The notes below the pieces were generated by a model. The model was not told where the DNA came from. It was given only the letters and a program-made list of their open reading frames with translations, and did no database searches. Shown piece by piece: positions 2,403 to 11,160 of a DNA stretch of 64,000 nt. Source of the stretch: Epithemia pelagica (Eukaryota > Protista > Bacillariophyta); assembly GCA_946965045.2 (NCBI GenBank), contig OX337241.1, positions 2,356,001-2,420,000 of the forward strand, written 5' to 3'. Position numbers and translations under genes: made by a program. Position 1 is the stretch's first letter. Each line of letters opens with the position of its first letter.

Positions 2403-2517
2403 TCTGCTCCCATATATATTCTATGGTTGCCTTCACTCCAAACTCCAAAGAAGAACGACCACCGATTGGATTGTGGTTGCGCGAGTGAAGACGACCCGTC
2501 ATCCGTCGTCGTAAATC

Positions 2518-2728
2518 TACTTTAATAGCCAGGGTGGACGAGGAGGAGCTAGGGTGTGAGGAGTGGCTTAACTCCGAGAAGGGCAATAGCGACGAGGAGT
2601 GGACTGCCCCTGTGAGATCCGCGTAAGCGGATCGAGGGGGCAGTCCACGACGAGAAGCTATTGCCCGACGAGGAGTTAAGCCACGAGGAGCGCCCTGCGA
2701 CGAGGAGTTCCCCGGGGCTATTAAAGTA
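2518..2728. repeat. Nested inverted-repeat rod (fold-back) with interspersed (GA)CGAG(G/A)AG direct repeats
   Basis: Paired stems: 2518-2530/2716-2728, 2545-2550/2706-2711, 2551-2556/2691-2696, 2564-2574/2673-2683, 2581-2590/2657-2666, 2600-2610/2637-2647 and 2616-2622/2627-2633, closed by a GTAA loop. Confidence 0.9.
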
Positions 2729-2887
2729 TGTTAGCTTCCTTTGTCACGAGGAGTCCTGCCCGCGCACCCTAGGTAATTTTTGGTCTTCCTAAGTGATCGT
2801 TTCTCTCAATCGATACTTAGTAATCGTTGGCCTATTTAGCTTTCTACATTCGCGCCGGCACACTTTTAGTTAGGTATCTTGCTTGCG

Positions 2888-2985
2888 TGCTTGCGCACCT
2901 CATCCGATTGCTCGCGTTGCTCAAATTGCATCATACTGTCGTGCTTGCGCAACAAATCCGATGGCTCGCGTAAGTCAAATAGGTA
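2888..2985. repeat. Two imperfect direct copies with ~53-bp period
   Basis: gtgcttgcgcacctcatccgattgctcgcg (2888) versus gtgcttgcgcaacaaatccgatggctcgcg (2941). Confidence 0.75.
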
Positions 2986-3136
2986 ATTAGGACAAGTCGT
3001 GTTGTTTACATAGGCGTGACACAGGAATACATAAGTAATTTCTATTTATTACTTACATCCCCCACCCCCCAACTGACAATCCCACGATTCTCTCGTACAG
3101 ACGACACATTTTGTGCAACAACAACACAACAACATC

Positions 3137-6100
3137 ATGCGAAAAGGAAGACGACCGACCATGGTGACTCCTCCTCCTTCTGGAGGAGCTGCTCATGCTT
3201 CCAAACAGGTTGATTGTGGAGTCATAGACCTTTGCACCCCTCCTGATGTAATAGATCTTTGTAGTTCGTCTTCGTCGTCTAGTTGCTCATCAGACTCTTC
3301 GGGCGAAACTCTCGTCTTTGTCACCAAGGACAATGCAACAGACGAATGGGATGGCAATCTCTTTCGCCGCTCGGAACTCTACCACGACTGTACTGGGTCA
3401 TCCGACGACTTCAGCACCTGTAGTTCCGACCCTTGGATCATGGAAATCCTACAGAGACGGTAAGTTTTCGCCGCGTTTCCCACCATTGTCGTGTGTTTTC
3501 GTTCCAGACGTCTTCCCAAAATTTCAATCCACCTGCCATGCGCGCGCGCATGGTCGAGTCGCTGTTTTGTTTCCTACTGATTCCTACGTGCAGCCTACGT
3601 ATCCGCACATTGTCGCAAGTGTCACCGTCTTCACTTTCCTCACTCTCATTTTTCATTGTGCATCGTTTTTTCATTGTCGTTTCGCAGCCCGACCATGGCG
3701 ACTCGACAATCTCGCCGCCAAATAGAGCGGGCGGCTGCCAACAGAAACAACGACATTCCCACCAACAACAATGTCAATCCATACCGCAATCCAGTCCGTC
3801 CACCCGATAGCCGCCAGAGTCGTCCACCCTTGTCGAATGTGAACCTTCCTTCCCAAAATCGTCGTCGTCTTCCTCTTCGTCAACAAGGACAAGAAGCACC
3901 CGAGCAATCAAAGTAAGTAACCTATGTCTGAGAATGTGTTGTTTACTATTGTTATCTGTCTCGTTTCTAACCTCATTGTGTCTTTAGCAATGTGGCTGTG
4001 CCCACACTCTCGTCTCGTCGTCAACAAAACATGGCGGAAGTTCTTCCAAACGCGACGGATGCTCTCCTCAACGCTCCAACGATAGTTGAGTCTAACTTGG
4101 TGGATACCAAGCTAGTATCCCAAGCTCTAGTGAAGAAGAAGCATCTGGCTTGGGATGCTGAGTCGAACAGCATGAAGATTGGCGAGGTGTCGTTCAACCC
4201 GCCCACCATGGATTCCACGCGAGCACGATCTTTGTCGGCCTGGGCGCAGTACTGCCGGCTGTCGCCGACCATCTACGGCAATAACACCTTCACCATCCGT
4301 GACCTCACCGGATGCAAGGCGTCATACGACAAGGAGAAGGCGGCGTCTGTGAACAAGTTTCTCGGGTGCATTCAGAGGCATCACGAGATGCACTTCCTGC
4401 TGGAGATTGTTCAAGATGTTGATGAACTGAGTGGAGCTGACATTCCCACTCCTCTTCTCTTCCTTGCTTTGCGTGGTGCAAAGACACCCCCCAAGTTGAC
4501 ATTGTTGAATAGTGCAATCATGGTCTTCTTGGTGAACCACCGAATGCGTGGGTTCAACCCCGAGACCGACGACGTAGAAGATCCGAAGTGGTTCTTCCAA
4601 CCCAACACCACCATGAAGATGCTAAATCACATCTTTGCCTTGATCAAGACTCACGGCATCGTCATCGCCCAGAGTGATCTTCGCAATGGTTTCGGCTCGT
4701 ACCATGGCTACCTGTCCGACATCTGGAACCGAGCTGCTCTCGTCCGTCCCGAATTCGGCCGCCTCCCCCAACGTGCACCCACGGCATTCGACGATGAAGA
4801 AAAAATGCGGACGTGTGAGCCAGAGCTTCGACCGTTCGAAGAAGGTCAGTACTCTCTTGCCTTAAGCATGGGAGTGTACAAATCGTCACGAGATTTTGGC
4901 CTTCGAGGCCCTGAGGTAAGTTGTTGTTGTTGTTGTTGTTGTCGATTGTTATTCTTGTTGTTGCTGTTGTCTAACAGTTTGGTTGTTGCATGCTGTTGTC
5001 TCCAGATAAGATTACTTAAAGTATCCGACCTGATTTTCAAAGATTCTCTAGACAAATCGTTTGGGTTGTTGGCTGGTCTTCCTGCGATTATTTTGCGTGA
5101 GTCTGTGTTGGAAAAATCTTCGACTCTCGCGACGAACAATCTGGCTTTCGACAGAACTGTCAACGACACGCAAGACTCGACGCACATGGTGATCGAGAAT
5201 CCTGACGACAAATTCTCGACGTACAAGATTTTGATGCACCTCATGAAGGTGGGCCACCCGCCGGGGTGGCAAGGTCTGTTTTTTCTAGAGAAGATACCCG
5301 CGAAACATTTGAAGGCCCGCAAGGATGGTGCGAAGCACCTCGGTTGGACAGAGTTGGTTCCTGAGACCTCAGAGACCGACGCCGATGGGTCGGGCTTCAA
5401 GTGTGCGGGTAGATTGGGTGTAAATTGGCCGAATAGGAACGCCCGTCAACTTGCCATCCGATGCAAGTTCGACAACGCCGAAAAAGTGACGTTTCGGACT
5501 GGTCGACGCACGGGCATCTCGAATGTTGCCAACTGTGGAGTGCCACAGAAAGCGTCGAATTCCTTTGCCCGTCACAAGTCGACGGAAGTCAACGTACTGT
5601 ACCAGGACGTCACGGCTGAAAATCAAGTTCGGACCGTCACGGCCAACTGGTACCGTCCTCCCGAAAAGAGCGACGAGGCCGACAAAGAAAACACGAAGAA
5701 TGGTACGTACACTCATTGCATGAATCCCTCTTTCTACTTTGTTACTAACTACTCTGCTATTATGTTTAGATGAGAAGGGATCCAAGAAGAAAGAGTCAAA
5801 AACCGCTTCATCCCCCTCGTCCTCGTCGTCATCCTCCACCGACATTGATGCCTTTATGAAAAAGGCCAAGAAGAAGATTCGCCGTCGCAAGGCGTTGCAG
5901 CAGCTCAAGGCTGCCAAGAGACAGGACGACGATTCGTCCATCGAAGACGAGGATTCATTGGCGCGAATCCTCCGTCTCTTGGACGACAATCCATCCAAGT
6001 CGTCCAAGTCGCAAACCCATGGTAAGTTGATTGTTGCTTTGTTGTTTTCTTGGTTGCATCGATCTCATTCCGTCTTCTCTTCTTGTCACAGACACGAAAT

Positions 6101-7287
6101 CCAAGAAAAAACGCAAGAAGAAGAAGAAGAAGAAGAAGACGACGAATAAGAAGTCCATCGATTACTCGTCTTCGTCGTCGTCGTCGTCATCGGATGTGGT
6201 TCTTGAAGTTCATTCTCACAGTCGTAAGAAAAAGAAAACTTCACCGCCTTCCACCATCGTTGGTACGTAGATTGTTGGCTTCTGGTTGATTGCTATATTG
6301 TGGTTTCTCACTGTTTTCGTCATTTCTCCATCACACTTGTTGGTTTCAGTTGCCTCTACGAAGCCATCACCACCACCTAGCGACCATGCTGTGGTGACAC
6401 AACCACCACCACCTGGAGTTGGGCCTCCACCACCAGCAACAACAACAGCAACAACGACAGTGGCCGTAGCGCAGCCACCGCCACCACCACCACGTCCATC
6501 AACTGTGGAGCAACATGCGCCGCCTCCAAGCATTGCGACTGTGCCACCACCACCTCCACCAGCCATGACAACGACAATTCCACCGTCGCTGTCGTCAATA
6601 GTGGAACAACAGGTGGTAGATCCAACCACCATTACGGCCGTGCAACCACCACCCACAACAACCATTGCAGTCTTTCAACCTCCAGCACCACCTGCATCAA
6701 CATTGGAACAACATGCCCCACCTCCATGCACGGGGGGGACCACGAAACCACCACCAACAACGACATCGTCAACGGCCCTGGTTCCGATGGAAAACAACAA
6801 CAACCACTACGAGTCCTCCAACCATCATCAAACCCTCGGAGTCGTGCAGCCACCAGCACCACCTCCATCAACATCGGAGCAACATGCTCCTCCCCCAAGC
6901 ACGACGTCCATGCAACCACCACCACCTTCGACATCGTCCACGCCCCATCACGGAGGGTATCACCACACCAGTAGTCGAGACCGCGGGGTTGATTGTCGTG
7001 TGGAGGAGCACCATCGTGTTGCTTATCATCGCAACAACTGGTACTCCCCACCTCCACCATCTGAGTCGCCACCATATCATCATCATCCTCATCACCACCA
7101 ATCTTCCCGCGGATACCATCACCGCCCATACACACCATCACCACCACCACCGCCGTACTACCGTGACATCTACCGTGGTGGTGGATATACTCCACCACCT
7201 CCTCCACATCATCATCACCATCACCATCACCGTGGTTCGCGTCACCATGGCGGCAGCCATGGATATGGCCGTGGCTACCACTACTGA
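3137..7287 (+). CDS. Tyrosine recombinase (Crypton-like), 7 exons, ~1177 aa
   Basis: Exons 3137-3459, 3688-3912, 3988-4915, 5006-5702, 5770-6021, 6092-6262 and 6350-7287 total 3534 nt, all with GT-AG introns and frame preserved. Motifs: FGLRGPE|IRLLKVSDL (catalytic R), FRTGRRTG (HxxR box), ARHKS (H/W) and VLYQD (catalytic Y). Confidence 0.8.
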
Positions 7288-8510
7288 GTCTTCGGTACGT
7301 TTGCTTTTGTTGTTGCATTCTTGTTTGATTGTTGTCTCTTTCTCTTACCATTCTATCACTCTTTTTGACAGATTGATATCGCTTTTGCTCTTTTGCATGT
7401 CCCTTGCAAGGTGGTCTCTAGCTTGATGTCTCGATAGGTACGTCAGATTTCCTGGTCCGCGTTCCACTCCACTTTACACACCAATTTCTCACGCGTTCTC
7501 GATTTTTTGCTATTTTGTCTTGGCATGAAATTTCGTGGTGCATTTCGCTTTGCTACTGAATTTTCCGTGTCTTGTGTACGCTTTGTGTCGTGTGTTTGAT
7601 TGTTACGCCCTGCATCGTGATTCTTTGTTTCCGTGTCTGTGTTTCCGTTTTTGCTTTTGCTATTTGATTCGTGTTGTTCTCGCCTTTTCCGTTGGTGCAC
7701 CTCTTGTTCGCTTTGTCCTGTTCCTGTTCTCTTTCTCTCTCCTGGGTGTACTACTTTTCGCTGTGTGTACTACTTTCCTTGGTGTGCTACTTTTTCGTTT
7801 GGGCTATTCTAATTTTTATACTCTAAAATAAAAATCCAAGTACAGTAATTTTTCGGGCTTATGTAGAGTGGGGAGTAGGTGGGGGAGGGGTAGGACGACG
7901 AGTGACAAAGGTAGCTGCTGACCAGTGGATCGCACATAAACTACATGACAATCTCCTAGTAGGGGATTGCACAGTCATACGAATAGGGGTACAGGTACAG
8001 GGGATTCCTACAAGTACTACATTGTAGTAGTGTGTGGCTTGTTCGACGCCCGGCGCGTAAGCACGTGTGTGGATCGTCGCACACGTGGGGGACTTCTCTG
8101 GGGGGTACTGAAAGCATGTGATTCTCTTAAGTAAGAGAGAGTGACGCAAGCTGGATGCACGTGACAAGGACGTGCGCAGCACGTGCTTTATTTGACAATG
8201 GCGTGCGTGCTGCCATCGTTTGTTAGGAGGGGGCAGTAGTGCCGTTGAGAGAGTTGAGACACTCGGTGCTTGCAGTTTGCAGTCTGGTCGTTCGTGTCCA
8301 CGACAACTCGTGATTCGCCGAGAGCAGCTTGCGCCTTCGTCTTTGGGCGCAACACATGTGTGTGTCGTTGCGCTGTTCTCTTCTTTGTAGTGTTGTTTTC
8401 TGTTTTGTTGTTTGTTGTTGTTGTGCTGGAGAATCTATCCATATCATCTCTCTGTCGTATCATTCTTCTCTCTAGCTTGCAGCAACCAAGGCAACACACA
8501 CCTCTTCTGC

Positions 8511-8547: not shown

Positions 8548-8613
8548 ACGTCTTGTTGTTGACAAACGAATCGGACCGACCATCTTGAAGTATTATTGCG
8601 ACCAAGAGCAACC

Positions 8614-8740
8614 ATGGCAACGGCCGCCACGACGAGTCCCACCATGACCACTCCAGTAGTAGTGCCTCCTCCTCCTCCCATGAAAAAGAATCGATTGCAA
8701 GCACGAGAACAAGTGGCCATGGCATGGCACCAACGACGTC

Positions 8741-8776
<36 letters not shown>

Positions 8777-11160
8777 CGGGCCAAGACTCCTCCTCCCAAC
8801 GAAGCACGCGTCCTCCCGCATCGACTGCTTCGTCGAGTCGATCGACGGCCCTCACCACACAACCACAACCACAACAACCCCCTGCGTGGTTTCCCTTTTG
8901 GTCCGCCTTGGTGCAAAAAGCGAGCAGCGTACAACGCTGTGGAGGTTGCACGACTACCAACCACCACAAGAGTTTTACCACCAAAGGCCACCCAACCACA
9001 ACTTCATTCCACAAACCACCACCAAACTTTGCTCGACGACCCTCCCACCAACAACGATTCGTGGACTCCAGCAGCAAGGGTAGCAGTAATAGTAGTACTA
9101 CTCCTACGACGACGACGACAAGCCCCACAACGTTTCCGTCCATGTTGGCCTTGCATCAAGCCAATGCCTTGTCACGACAAATTGAAACCCTACTCTTGCA
9201 TCATCAAGGACCGAGTCAACGGAATTTGGGGGAACCACAACCAGAGCAAGAACAAGACGACGACCCGGAACCACACCACCAAGACCAAACGCCCATGACT
9301 CGGACGACGGCCACCGAACCCCTTGCTTCCTCCTCCAAGTCGTCTTCTTCTTCTTCTTCCTTACTCGTGTCCATTTTATCCTCGCAATACAATTTGGAAC
9401 AGGCCGTGTACGAAATGGCCCAGGCTCGGACTCGCGCCTTTTGGCTCGTGGATTTGAGTACGGTCGTTCATCGATTGGTGGAATGGGATCAAACATGGAA
9501 TGCCACGAGTAGTAGTAGTACGACGCATGTGCCCCCGGTACGACTCTTGTATCGCGTCTCGGCCAATGCCCATCCCATTTTGTTGCGCGTCTTGACCTGT
9601 TGTTGCACCACGACGACAACGACCAGCAGCAGCACAACAACAAGATCCTTGAGAGGAACCAAACAACCCCAACAACAACAACCAGAACAGGAACCCGTGG
9701 TGCAATTGGTGACGAGCAATGCGTGGGATTTGGAACAAGTCCAACACTTTGGTGCGTCGCAGCCGAAGCAGCAACCACACCCACCATTAGTGGTGACGGT
9801 GTGGGATGATTCCACCTGGACGGGCAAACCCAATGCCTATTTGCGCAAAGCCTGGCTCGGACGACCACAATCCTCCTCCGCGTCATCATCACAACCACCA
9901 CAAGCACAACCCGCCATTTCCTGTTTGGCCGTAAATGGACCCCACGAAGTGCATCGCATTTGGAATGCCTTGCAACGGGCCACGCAACGACGACGACAAC
10001 GACCAAACCAATCGTCACCCAACAACAACCACCACACTCCTCGTGCCGCCGGCTTGTCGGTCTGTCTTCGATTGCCCGTCGGTCACCCCCACCAATGGTT
10101 GGACACGTGGATTTCAACGGTCCAGGCCTTGGACCGGTTGGCCGTCACGCACCAGAACCAGGACCAGGACGAGTCGTCCTCCTCCTTGTTTGGCATTGTG
10201 GTGGTGAGTGTGGAAGTGTCCGATTTGATCCACTCCTCCAACGCACCACAAAAGGAGGAGGAGCACACGTCTCCCGTAGTAGACTATACGAGTACTCCGT
10301 CGAGTACGACTCCCCGACCGCCGTATTCGTTGGACTCGACCAGCTGGAAAGCCTTGATAGAGTGTCTGACGTGGAATCACCACAACCAGGATCACGACGA
10401 CACGAATGACGACACGCGACGAGTCGCATCGCCGCAGGCCATTCGAGTCGAATTGACGGGTTCGGTGGAATTGGATCCGGCCATGGTGGAATTTGTGTCC
10501 GTCCTCCAACGACAGGCGGCATGCTGCTCCACTACGACGACGACACGGCCACAACCACTGATTTCCGAACTGGCCATTGACATTACCGGTCCCCTCTTGA
10601 CGTCGGCGGGAGCCTTGTGTACACGGGTCATTGGTGTCCGAGAAAGTAGTAGTGACCCTACCAATCACGACGAGAGCAGCGCGAGTGCTAGCGCGAGTGC
10701 TCCGACGACGACCCCCCAAACCACAGAGGAGCCACCCGCCACAACAAGGACGACGACCCGTTCCAAACGCCGACTTCATTATTACATTGACGATGGATGT
10801 TATGGATCCCTCTATCAAGAAGAAGGAGGAAAAAGTGCCGCTCATCCACTTCAACCGGTTCCCCTCATTACCACGCCGCGGAGTACTACAGCAAGTAATA
10901 GCAACCAGGACACGCGGACAAACTCGACCCAGGACAACGACAATCACAACAACAAGGACACGTTTGTCTCGACCGTCTGGGGTCCCACCTGCGATGGATT
11001 GGATCGAGTGTGCAATGACATTTGGTTGCCGGAATTGCAACGAGACGATTGGCTCGTCTTTCCCATTCACTGCAGTGGAGGAGAAGGATTGGGAACCGCC
11101 TTTAATGGATTTTGTCCACCCGATACCGCCTATTGCGTCCTCGGATACTTTCGAGAGTAA
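8614..11160 (+). CDS. Ornithine-decarboxylase-fold protein, probably inactive (antizyme-inhibitor-like), copy 1
   Basis: C-terminal YYIDDGCYGSL, STVWGPTCDGLD, LPELQRDDWLVF and GTAFNGF motifs. The PLP-lysine motif YAVKCN reads YRVSAN. Confidence 0.75.

Follow-up and report, generated by a model that had tools for sequence, protein, structure and literature searches.

The window, by which we mean the whole 64,000-nucleotide stretch of DNA that was analysed, carries on its + strand a tyrosine-recombinase transposon whose host is apparently a eukaryote of diatom type (Table 1). The element is present in about 40 copies in the genome, about 10 of them full-length and about 25 of them non-autonomous derivatives of 0.7-1 kb, and homology between these copies begins at 2508 on the left and stops at 7914 on the right (..AAGGTAG). 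The boundaries, which the preliminary description expected to emerge from a genome-wide comparison of the ends, are thus defined as 2508/2512 to 7914. Long direct repeats at the element ends were not found in the repeat search.

Table 1. Features of the element and its immediate flanks, in positions of the window
Feature	Position	Strand	Basis
Element (tyrosine-recombinase transposon), ~5.4 kb	2508/2512-7914	+	
GTCG, target-derived (consensus GTNG), abuts left end	2508..2511	+	left-flank logo, 34 independent insertions
TAAATC, the element's own spacer, directly 3' of crossover point	2512..2517	+	left-junction comparison
Rod, imperfect hairpin of ~210 nt with purine-rich internal loops (GACGAGGAG-like, both sides)	2518..2728	+	repeat search
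TGTTAG, opposite spacer TAAATC in joined-end hairpin	2729..2734	+	MFE, joined ends and natural tandem junction
P1 left half (CT-T-CCTTTGTCAC), pairs with 7902-7914, contains T x T	2735..2747	+	repeat search, copies
GAGGAG, left side of 6x6 purine-rich internal loop	2748..2753	+	direct reading, copies
P2 left half (TCCTGCCC)	2754..2761	+	repeat search, copies
Largest open stretch of recombinase gene, including catalytic region RxxR...RH...Y	3992..5773	+	homologue comparison
P2 right half (GGGTAGGA)	7888..7895	+	repeat search, copies
CGACGA, right side of 6x6 loop	7896..7901	+	direct reading, copies
P1 right half (GTGACAAAGG-T-AG), ends at right terminus GTAG^	7902..7914	+	~40 copies
Flank, target spacer CTGCTG then AC (consensus N6-AC), outside element	7915..7922	+	right-flank logo

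The recombinase and the insertion signature

Residues R166, R169, R191, H192 and Y201 of the recombinase are near-invariant among 31 homologues. Pfam, a PDB sequence search and Foldseek returned nothing significant for this protein, the sole match in the sequence-profile libraries was phrog_1 integrase (E 0.044), and its neighbours in the protein atlas carry Phage_integrase or DUF3504. The best 27 of 48,161 structural matches to an AlphaFold model (pLDDT 76.6) all belong to tyrosine recombinases, to domesticated or regulatory proteins related to these (QRICH1, Ndc10, MrpR) or to type IB topoisomerases, at scores that are moderate only (Z <= 6.5: Cre 6.5, XerA 6.3, integron integrase 6.2, QRICH1 5.4). 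By its predicted structure, the element encodes a protein of the tyrosine-recombinase fold. A reverse transcriptase (RT) had been thought absent and, in agreement with this, Pfam detected no family at E <= 0.01, RT, RNase H and HUH included, in 20 open reading frames of at least 80 aa scanned on both strands of the element.

The flanks of 34 independent insertions define the target as GTNG|N6-AC, the left-flank logo being G31 T33 N G33 and the right-flank logo having A at +7 in 32/34 and C at +8 in 28/34, and insertion occurs without target duplication. At all 34 the left junction consists of the target GTNG followed by the element spacer, and the right junction of the element's GTAG followed by the target spacer; the spacer on the left is TAAATC or TAAGTC in every case and never target sequence. 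The termini carry short direct repeats, GTNG on the left and GTAG on the right, which in the window copy are imperfect (GTCG for GTAG). A single crossover point is thereby fixed in 34/34 insertions, and the junction types stand at 34:0, whereas a two-strand exchange across heterologous spacers would predict two outcomes; this agrees with a single strand exchange resolved by replication but does not prove it. Empty sites, which the preliminary description had proposed as a check on the boundaries, do exist as paralogues: where L062 carries the element, ..AGTCG is followed there directly by ACGAAAAC.., that is, GTCG and then the right flank, with no duplication. We note that a duplex circle which undergoes a single strand exchange and is then replicated also fits a fixed crossover point.

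Paired arms and the predicted joined-end hairpin

An inverted-repeat search identified two arms at 2733-2761 and 7888-7916 (29 nt, 79% complementary), the bases of which were also read directly. It had been proposed that the two ends pair around a symmetric 6x6 loop, and this layout stands: a proximal stem (P1) pairs at 14/15 positions with a T x T mismatch, and is followed by the 6x6 loop and a distal stem (P2) of 8 bp including one G.T. What does not stand is the outer limit of the right arm, since 7914 is the right boundary in the approximately 40 copies and 7915-7916 (CT) are therefore copy-specific flank outside the element; the conserved part of P1 is 10 bp, T x T and 2 bp. The duplex between the right arm and the 44 nt after the rod has an energy of -20.3 kcal/mol, compared to -9.9 +/- 2.1 for shuffles, of which 0/2000 were as low, and in a scan of the whole element the best partner of the right arm is the left arm, the next unrelated site reaching -15.9. 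The right terminal 27 nt thus find their complement some 225 nt inward from the left end, which is not a classical TIR, and a conserved inverted structure of this kind, formed by the right terminus and a subterminal left segment, is unreported for Cryptons.

The rod, which by itself folds at -64.3 kcal/mol, is kept in approximately 40 copies. Three natural head-to-tail junctions read ..AAGGTAG TAAATC TAC.., and in these the rod is bordered immediately by the right arm on its 5' side and by the left arm on its 3' side. When the ends of the window copy are joined in the same way, a single hairpin of about 290 nt is predicted at -84.7 kcal/mol, with the crossover point GTAG^TAAATC within its stem and the spacer paired only partially to TGTTAG (2 Watson-Crick pairs, 2 G.T). 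A natural junction, L063:5545-5880, folds at -75.4 kcal/mol (z = -8.3) with P1 and P2 in the MFE, as compared to -66.0 kcal/mol for its minus strand, in which most of P1 and P2 is lost. The predicted joined-end folds in four families and in one natural junction rebuild a duplex-like core at the cleavage point. With the ends joined, the arms sit on either side of the rod and simply extend it, and the panhandle over a 5.1-kb loop envisaged in the preliminary description is not needed. The head-to-tail junctions in the genome are indirect evidence of an extrachromosomal circular intermediate, but an insertion next to a right end already in place may produce them as well.

Four divergent elements of another assembly share this layout (L076, L082, L081 and L085; three further families); their recombinases are 35-48% identical and their arm sequences differ. 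Cognate arm duplexes have energies of -19 to -34 kcal/mol, compared to -5 to -13 across families. In P2 a compensatory swap of C-G and G-C distinguishes lineage A from lineages B and C, and at least 3 compensatory pairs and one paired indel separate L081 from L085. The suggestion that the arms co-evolved is thus borne out, complementarity being kept across the lineages of this genome and the four divergent elements, and the arms always flank a tyrosine-recombinase gene, as the same suggestion implied. The left half of P1 is almost unchanging among the G000 copies, and all five elements compared have the T x T mismatch at a distance of 2 nt ahead of the crossover. On the other hand, P2 is interrupted by a G x G mismatch in the abundant short-c lineage, and P1 of lineage B contains three G.T in a row, with a cognate duplex of only -11 kcal/mol as DNA, which suggests either that strict pairing is not required or that protein or RNA stabilises the stems. 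In more distant homologues, which are on short metagenomic contigs, the rod is not obvious.

Strand asymmetry and a proposed folded attachment site

Within the 66 consensus pairs there are 145 G.T cells and 1 A.C cell, and where the majority of a column is Watson-Crick the minority is G.T in 15 columns and A.C in 1. Similarly, 16 G.T pairs occur in the MFE folds predicted for four representative elements, and 0/15 of the 1x1 mismatches in these folds are A/C. Non-stem DNA of the same copies, taken as a control, gives 52 versus 45 (Fisher p = 0.0015 against 15:1), which points to selection acting on the + strand. The minus strand of the junctions folds well too, being weaker by just 2.5-10.6 kcal/mol. 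Judged from sequence, the asymmetry argues for a structure made by the + strand alone, and to this extent it supports the single-stranded intermediate that had been proposed; the ssDNA or RNA intermediate itself we infer.

These observations lead us to propose, with a probability of roughly 55%, that the arms form the base of a single composite recombination site in a Crypton-like, recombinase-only transposon whose attachment site is the folded + strand. Whether in a circle after excision or where two ends lie head to tail, the ends would join at GTAG^TAAATC, and the joined + strand would fold into one imperfect hairpin of about 290 nt, presumably with the crossover point within a duplex-like core that has P1 on one side and the base of the rod on the other, a conserved T x T mismatch that precedes the cut by 2 nt and a spacer that is only partly paired. 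The folded + strand, whether as an extruded hairpin or a single-stranded circle, would most likely be recognised by the element's tyrosine recombinase; strand exchange with a double-stranded target GTNG^N6-AC might then take place at one fixed position, and replication would complete the insertion with no target duplication. We infer that the hairpin forms in vivo, that it is DNA and not RNA, and that only one strand is exchanged. More tentatively, and on odds that we would place somewhat below even, this may be a eukaryotic tyrosine-recombinase transposon which recombines via a folded single DNA strand, by a one-strand exchange finished by replication and possibly with one-strand copy-out from the donor.

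Alternatively, the arms might be two inverted recombinase-binding sites that are bound as ordinary double-stranded DNA with no strand folding, the junction being the true core and the sequence beyond the rod a non-cleavable pseudo-core (GAAG for GTAG), much as other tyrosine recombinases bind their arm or accessory sites. Inverted repeats separated by a spacer of 6-8 bp are the usual make-up of a tyrosine-recombinase site (PMC3212892), a dyad (AAAGGTAG-TAAAT-CTACTTT) is present at the joined ends, and the target resembles a duplex pseudo-palindrome, GT..N..AC. Covariation between the arms, by itself, is also expected from two inverted copies of one protein-binding site, if one co-evolving protein binds both. 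However, duplex binding gives no reason for G.T to be preferred over A.C at 15:1 against a control of 52:45. Nor would an inverted duplex repeat give loops that are purine-rich on both sides of one strand, where the same motif recurs in place of complementary sequences, and the stems between the loops differ freely among families yet remain complementary. We consider this reading unlikely, although it is no weaker than any other competitor of the folded + strand.

An equally improbable alternative is the panhandle in its literal form, in which the + strand of the integrated element is single-stranded throughout, the arms pair over the 5.1-kb loop, the cut sites meet and one strand is excised. 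The identical pairing could synapse GTNG^TAAATC with GTAG^N6, one-strand copy-out would account for the approximately 40 copies, and the commonest copies are the short derivatives of 0.7-1 kb, with a loop of about 0.4 kb; strand-biased circularising elements also appear to be a bacterial precedent (PMC9345347). Against this, 5 kb of ssDNA is unexpected in eukaryotic chromatin and a local 290-nt hairpin demands far less, no sequence feature requires the long-range form, and it is only with the ends joined that a partly paired spacer can be understood.

The structure might instead be one of RNA, with a sense transcript spanning the rod and both arms, either full-length or a read-through of a circle or tandem junction, folding into a panhandle or rod with a role in regulation, recombinase recruitment, circularisation or evasion of silencing. 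The favoured strand is the sense strand of the recombinase in all five elements compared, and the G.U wobble runs, among them the three consecutive pairs of lineage B, resemble RNA more than DNA, as do the tandem G.A loops. Nevertheless, the DNA crossover point is precisely where the pairing stops, and the register of the pairing runs on across the DNA junction, tyrosine recombinases have DNA as their substrate, RNA could not be copied back without an RT, and no Rfam family matches. Furthermore, an AATAAA-like box at 7826-7835, about 60 nt upstream of the right arm, is conserved and also present in L082, so the mRNA may end before the right arm, although poly(A) signals in diatoms are poorly defined. 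We regard RNA as slightly less plausible again than the two alternatives above. Finally, chance complementarity of low-complexity, purine-rich ends, for which one could cite the repeat-rich region and its many further inverted pairs of similar length, has a negligible probability given that 0/2000 shuffles attain the arm duplex energy and that the arms hold a fixed position right after the rod and at the very terminus, and the conservation data, in which five elements with different arm sequences are still complementary, rule it out.

Relation to known systems

To our knowledge, no class of eukaryotic DNA transposons is less well understood than the Cryptons, with the intermediate, the cis-acting site and the cleavage position all undefined, and the route of a folded single strand and a tyrosine recombinase has so far been known only in bacteria. 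The present element provides an exact crossover point, a target consensus, an active-looking set of copies, autonomous as well as non-autonomous, and a structured site that is conserved and under strand-specific constraint. If our proposal is true, single-strand recombination by tyrosine recombinases would extend beyond bacteria, with a eukaryotic counterpart of attC and CTX integration, and the multiplication of a "cut-and-paste", circle-forming element would be explained.

Crypton DNA transposons (Goodwin et al. 2003; Kojima & Jurka 2011, PMC3212892), of which CryptonS occurs in oomycetes and a diatom, share with the element a tyrosine recombinase as the sole recognisable enzyme with no RT and no LTRs, short imperfect terminal direct repeats (here GTNG and GTAG), insertion without target duplication, a presumed circular intermediate and stramenopile hosts. 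However, Cryptons were described as having neither terminal inverted repeats nor conserved structural features (PMC3212892), whereas here the right terminus, the rod and the subterminal left arm give a conserved hairpin of about 290 nt. The termini are GTAG and not TATGG, the catalytic box is RxxR and not HxxR, and the protein is undetected by Pfam Phage_integrase.

The mobilisation route was previously presented as undescribed, but bacterial folded single-strand tyrosine-recombinase sites are a precedent, namely integron attC (PMC3458562) and the CTX phage. In attC/IntI (PMC3458562, PMC2727003), as here, an imperfect hairpin of one strand rebuilds a core-like duplex with conserved unpaired stem bases, structure is kept while sequence varies, and there is one crossover point without duplication, with one strand exchange resolved by replication (for our element, as proposed above). 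Integrons are bacterial, with attC hairpins of 60-140 nt and an integrase encoded by the platform and not the cassette, in contrast to an apparently eukaryotic, diatom-type host, an element-encoded recombinase and a much longer hairpin with repeated purine loops, split between the ends of the integrated element. The CTX phage attP(+) site, reportedly described by Val et al. in 2005, is said to be a folded single-strand integration site used with XerCD. In both CTX and our element, inverted core-like sites about 100-200 nt apart would anneal in the + strand with mismatches in the central region, and integration would proceed by one strand exchange. As a filamentous phage, CTX draws its ssDNA from a rolling circle and depends on recombinases of its host, whereas no ssDNA source is evident for the element.

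DIRS-like retrotransposons (PMC7192593) are likewise tyrosine-recombinase elements of eukaryotes; their ends have a complement elsewhere in the element, and they use single-stranded intermediates, which for our element we can only suppose. They differ in having RT and RNase H, with the complementarity serving completion of the cDNA; no RT was found here. IS200/IS605, Helitrons and Replitrons (PMC10288648) rely on HUH endonucleases, whereas the element has a tyrosine-recombinase fold and no detected HUH, but all have subterminal hairpins, strand-specific ends and insertion 3' of a short specific sequence without target duplication. The hairpin in combination with the GTAG terminus represents a signature by which algal genomes can be searched for elements of this kind and for the short copies derived from them.

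Ends that pair and the hairpin predicted at their junction

We consider the best-supported reading of this sequence to be that of a Crypton-like element whose attachment site would be a composite hairpin, completed when the ends are joined; the strand read would be the + strand, also the sense strand of the recombinase. The observations that carry this reading are the predicted structure of the hairpin, its conservation and strand bias, the crossover point and the fold of the recombinase. The preliminary description had proposed that the two ends of the element pair as a panhandle around a symmetric loop, and both stretches can indeed be read directly in the sequence, a repeat search of the window listing them as two inverted 29-nt arms with 79% complementarity and 5126 nt between them. 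Within the whole element the best partner of the right arm is the left arm (-20.3 kcal/mol, against -15.9 for the next unrelated site), and 0 of 2000 shuffled right arms attain the observed energy (mean -9.9, sd 2.1); chance complementarity is rejected. The pairing stands as drawn except for its final two pairs, 7915-7916, which are flank, since genomic copies of the element end at 7914.

Features of the element, its surroundings and its relatives (window positions unless a locus is named)
Feature	Position	Description	Detail
Element	2512-7914	begins at 2508 with the shared tetranucleotide
Rod	2518-2728	imperfect hairpin
Left arm	2733-2761
Right arm	7888-7916		as first drawn
P1		proximal stem, crossover side	14/15 paired as first drawn; T x T mismatch
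6x6 loop		symmetric, between P1 and P2	GAGGAG opposite CGACGA
P2		distal stem	8 bp, one G.T
Direct repeat	2770-2790	just past left arm
Right subterminal block	7826-7868		45-90 nt from right end
Repeat-family copy	832-983	minus strand
Adjoining ORF	8596-11160	+ strand
Lineage A		full-length	window copy and a 97.8% identical copy
Lineage B		full-length	six copies
Lineage C and L062		full-length	further lineages
L063	G000 C10:2746800-2753800	triple head-to-tail array	junction L063:5545-5880
L015/L021	G000 C3:2334511-2336059	two short copies
L076 arms	8011-8040 and 11797-11826 of L076
L081/L085 arms		39 nt	87-90% complementary
Transposon in L081	5681-7847 of L081	pogo-like, DDE_1

Following both ends through the genome, as had been suggested, fixed the boundaries and also yielded paralogous empty sites. 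In the 60.5-Mb assembly (G000) the left 300 nt occur about 40 times, with homology beginning at 2508, and right-end homology ceases at 7914-7916. In the 37 copies with both ends read, the left junction is [flank]GTNG and then TAAATC/TAAGTC-TACTTTAATAGC.., and the right end is ..AAGGTAG and then variable flank, from which the extent of the element in the Table follows.

Three genomic head-to-tail junctions read ..AAGGTAG-TAAATC-TAC.., and at such joined ends the right arm lies directly 5' of the rod and the left arm directly 3'. The joined ends of the copy in the window, folded as DNA, give one continuous hairpin (-84.7 kcal/mol, as compared to -64.3 for the rod alone) in which P2, the 6x6 loop and P1 prolong the rod base. 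A natural junction, that of the array L063, takes the same fold (-75.4 kcal/mol, z = -8.3), and its complementary strand reaches -66.0 kcal/mol with most of P1 and P2 lost. The crossover point, GTAG^TAAATC, is within the predicted stem, flanked by P1 and the rod base; it faces TGTTAG, and a T x T mismatch precedes it by 2 nt. The supposed panhandle thus amounts to the basal third of the rod, and the 5-kb loop that it was thought to close is unnecessary, as the joined ends already place the arms at the rod base. An Rfam search of families matched none.

Insertion signature and copies

The target, as read from 34 independent insertions, is GTNG followed by N6-AC (G31, T33, G33; A32, C28). The variable N falls at the left junction throughout, 36 of 37 copies have GTAG at the right, and the element spacer is always left and the target spacer always right (34:0). 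Classical two-strand exchange with a differing overlap of 4-8 bp would be expected to leave both reciprocal junction types after replication, whereas one type is seen; the pattern fits a single strand exchange at a fixed position and subsequent replication, and is silent on which strand is exchanged. Paralogues of the sequence into which the full-length copy L062 inserted read ..AGTCG and then directly ACGAAAAC.., and thus there was no target duplication. That insertion hit another copy of a repeat family whose members (one at the left of the window; also L046, L019 and L003) are 80-85% identical, the paralogues being empty sites that read ..CACAAAGTCG and, across the insertion point, ACGAAAACACC...

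The resident right end (GTAG-N6-AC) is itself a good target, which would explain the head-to-tail arrays. The array L063 consists of a full-length lineage-B copy, a 1.0-kb short copy and then flank with 82.5% identity to part of the rod region of L081, an element from another assembly. This flank opens with TATTAA, the spacer of the L081 family; members of different families apparently use one another's right ends as targets. The short copies L015 and L021 belong to different lineages and are arranged tail to tail, their right ends only 4 nt apart, which fits insertion at a pseudo-target provided on the opposite strand by the resident GTAG terminus. The right flanks of L081 and its relative L085 have N6-AA, not N6-AC (n = 2), and the target half-site may be family-specific.

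Full-length copies number about 10 (5.1-6.7 kb, several lineages) and non-autonomous copies about 25 (0.7-1.0 kb), the latter reduced to ~340 nt from the left end and ~100 nt from the right; the assembly also holds 38 loci of other recombinase families. In all six full-length lineage-B copies the frame stays open for only 275 aa, and in five of them (on C1, C7, C10 (two) and C17) the catalytic exon contains the same in-frame TAG. The copy in the window and its twin on C6 have open frames of 600 and 611 aa, and the active source may be lineage A. Of the non-autonomous lineages the most abundant, short-c (e.g., L011, L013), carries an A-type right end and a B/C-type left end, and looks like a recombinant.

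Conservation and strand bias of the hairpin

Among copies in the assembly the left arm is almost invariant and the right arm variable, and on the + strand the common P1 variants all pair with the left arm by G.T wobble. P2 of lineage A, TCCTGCCC paired with GGGTAGGA, is replaced in lineages B and C by TCGTGC(C) paired with G(T/C)ACGA, a compensatory C-G to G-C swap; the exceptions are short-c, whose P2 has a G x G mismatch, and lineage B, with three consecutive G.T pairs. Four homologous elements from ENA ERZ21939226 (L076, L082, L081 and L085), with recombinase fragments 35-48% identical to the window protein, share one layout: GTNG, spacer, a rod with GACGAG-type loops, 4-7 nt, the left arm, and a right arm that reaches the terminus and ends T-AG. 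Their stem sequences are quite unlike those of the window element; cognate arms pair at -19 to -34 kcal/mol and arms across families at -5 to -13, and between L081 and L085 an 18-bp stem shows at least three compensatory double changes and one paired indel. The T x T mismatch recurs in 5/5 families. Arm complementarity is thus conserved in homologous elements, the arms occur around recombinase genes, and the covariation that the preliminary description had proposed to check is found both between lineages and between families. More distant homologues (L077-L080, L083, L084) have no clear rod or arms on metagenomic contigs of 1.3-3.6 kb, too short to judge absence. The rod of L081 contains a nested pogo-like transposon with 29-nt terminal inverted repeats that are 93% complementary.

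In a duplex inverted repeat there is no cause for G.T to exceed A.C, since A.C on one strand is G.T on the other. Over 66 consensus pairs in 32 distinct joined-end sequences we counted 145 G.T cells and 1 A.C cell; among majority-Watson-Crick columns, 15 have minority G.T and 1 minority A.C. The MFE folds of four representative elements contain 16 G.T pairs, and A/C accounts for 0 of 15 single mismatches. The corresponding transitions in the interior of the same short copies, outside the hairpin, are balanced (A>G + C>T = 52, G>A + T>C = 45; Fisher p = 0.0015 for the stem asymmetry against this control), and therefore mutation bias does not account for the asymmetry. The same purine motif is found in loops on both sides of the + strand, and the favoured strand is the recombinase sense strand in every family. 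These features suggest that what is selected is a structure of the + strand.

A sense-strand transcript might carry that structure instead, which would suit both the wobble runs and the sense-strand preference, but the pairing halts exactly at the DNA crossover, and the mRNA may end before it reaches the right arm, to judge from a conserved AATAAA-like box ~60 nt ahead of that arm. The arms might alternatively be recombinase-binding sites in ordinary double-stranded DNA; such sites account for the arm covariation and leave the G.T bias and the same-strand loop motif unexplained. A long-range single-stranded panhandle is a possible intermediate in excision, chiefly of short derivatives, but nothing observed demands it. 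We infer that the composite hairpin forms in vivo, as DNA, with one strand exchanged: joining of the ends would complete it as the attachment site, the + strand would be read, and one strand would be exchanged with the target, with replication thereafter.

The right subterminal block (ACACTAAAATAAAAATCC...GTACAGTAATTTTT.GGGCTTA) is conserved in all lineages of the assembly, with variants in L076 and L082, and its GTAATTTT.GG recurs as a direct repeat beyond the left arm (..CCTAGGTAATTTTTGG). The block may combine a poly(A) signal with an accessory binding site.

The recombinase and comparison with known systems

The element has a single conserved protein, and an exhaustive HMMER search found 210 relatives of this window protein, in whose alignment R166 and R169 (RxxR), R191-H192 and Y201 are near-invariant. 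Several other sequence comparisons came back empty: a word-indexed protein search gave no match, Pfam at E <= 10 no integrase match for the window protein or 10 homologues, and PDB sequences no match by phmmer or profile. Language-model neighbours of the protein carry Phage_integrase or DUF3504. Against its AlphaFold model (pLDDT 76.6), Foldseek found nothing in the PDB at E <= 0.001, with QRICH1, Cre and phage integrases among the weak rows, and in structural alignment the best 27 of 48,161 PDB representatives were all tyrosine recombinases, their domesticated or regulatory relatives (QRICH1, Ndc10, MrpR) or type IB topoisomerases. The Z scores (Cre 6.5, XerA 6.3, integron integrase 6.2, Crypton-derived QRICH1 5.4) are moderate, and the weight of the assignment lies in how consistent the list is. 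No RT, RNase H, DDE or HUH domain was found in 20 ORFs scanned on both strands, in agreement with the proposal of mobilisation without RT. A DIRS-like element is rejected for want of an RT, and a classical TIR transposon for want of a DDE domain and of target duplication.

A comparable attachment site, read on a folded + strand, is the attP(+) of CTX phage. Integron attC (PMC3458562) is likewise a folded attachment site, the likeness here being drawn from sequence and predicted folds. Cryptons as published (PMC3212892) are recombinase-only, with short terminal direct repeats and no target duplication. Our element shares these three features and a stramenopile-type host, but differs in its large conserved structured site and the RxxR box of its recombinase, a comparison drawn from the description of Cryptons. 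A limited full-text literature search, which is not proof of absence, found no publication in which a recombinase-only transposon of a eukaryote is described with a hairpin or folded-strand site. The large ORF adjoining the element encodes an Orn/DAP/Arg decarboxylase C-terminal domain (PF00278, E 2.6e-12) and looks like an ordinary host gene.
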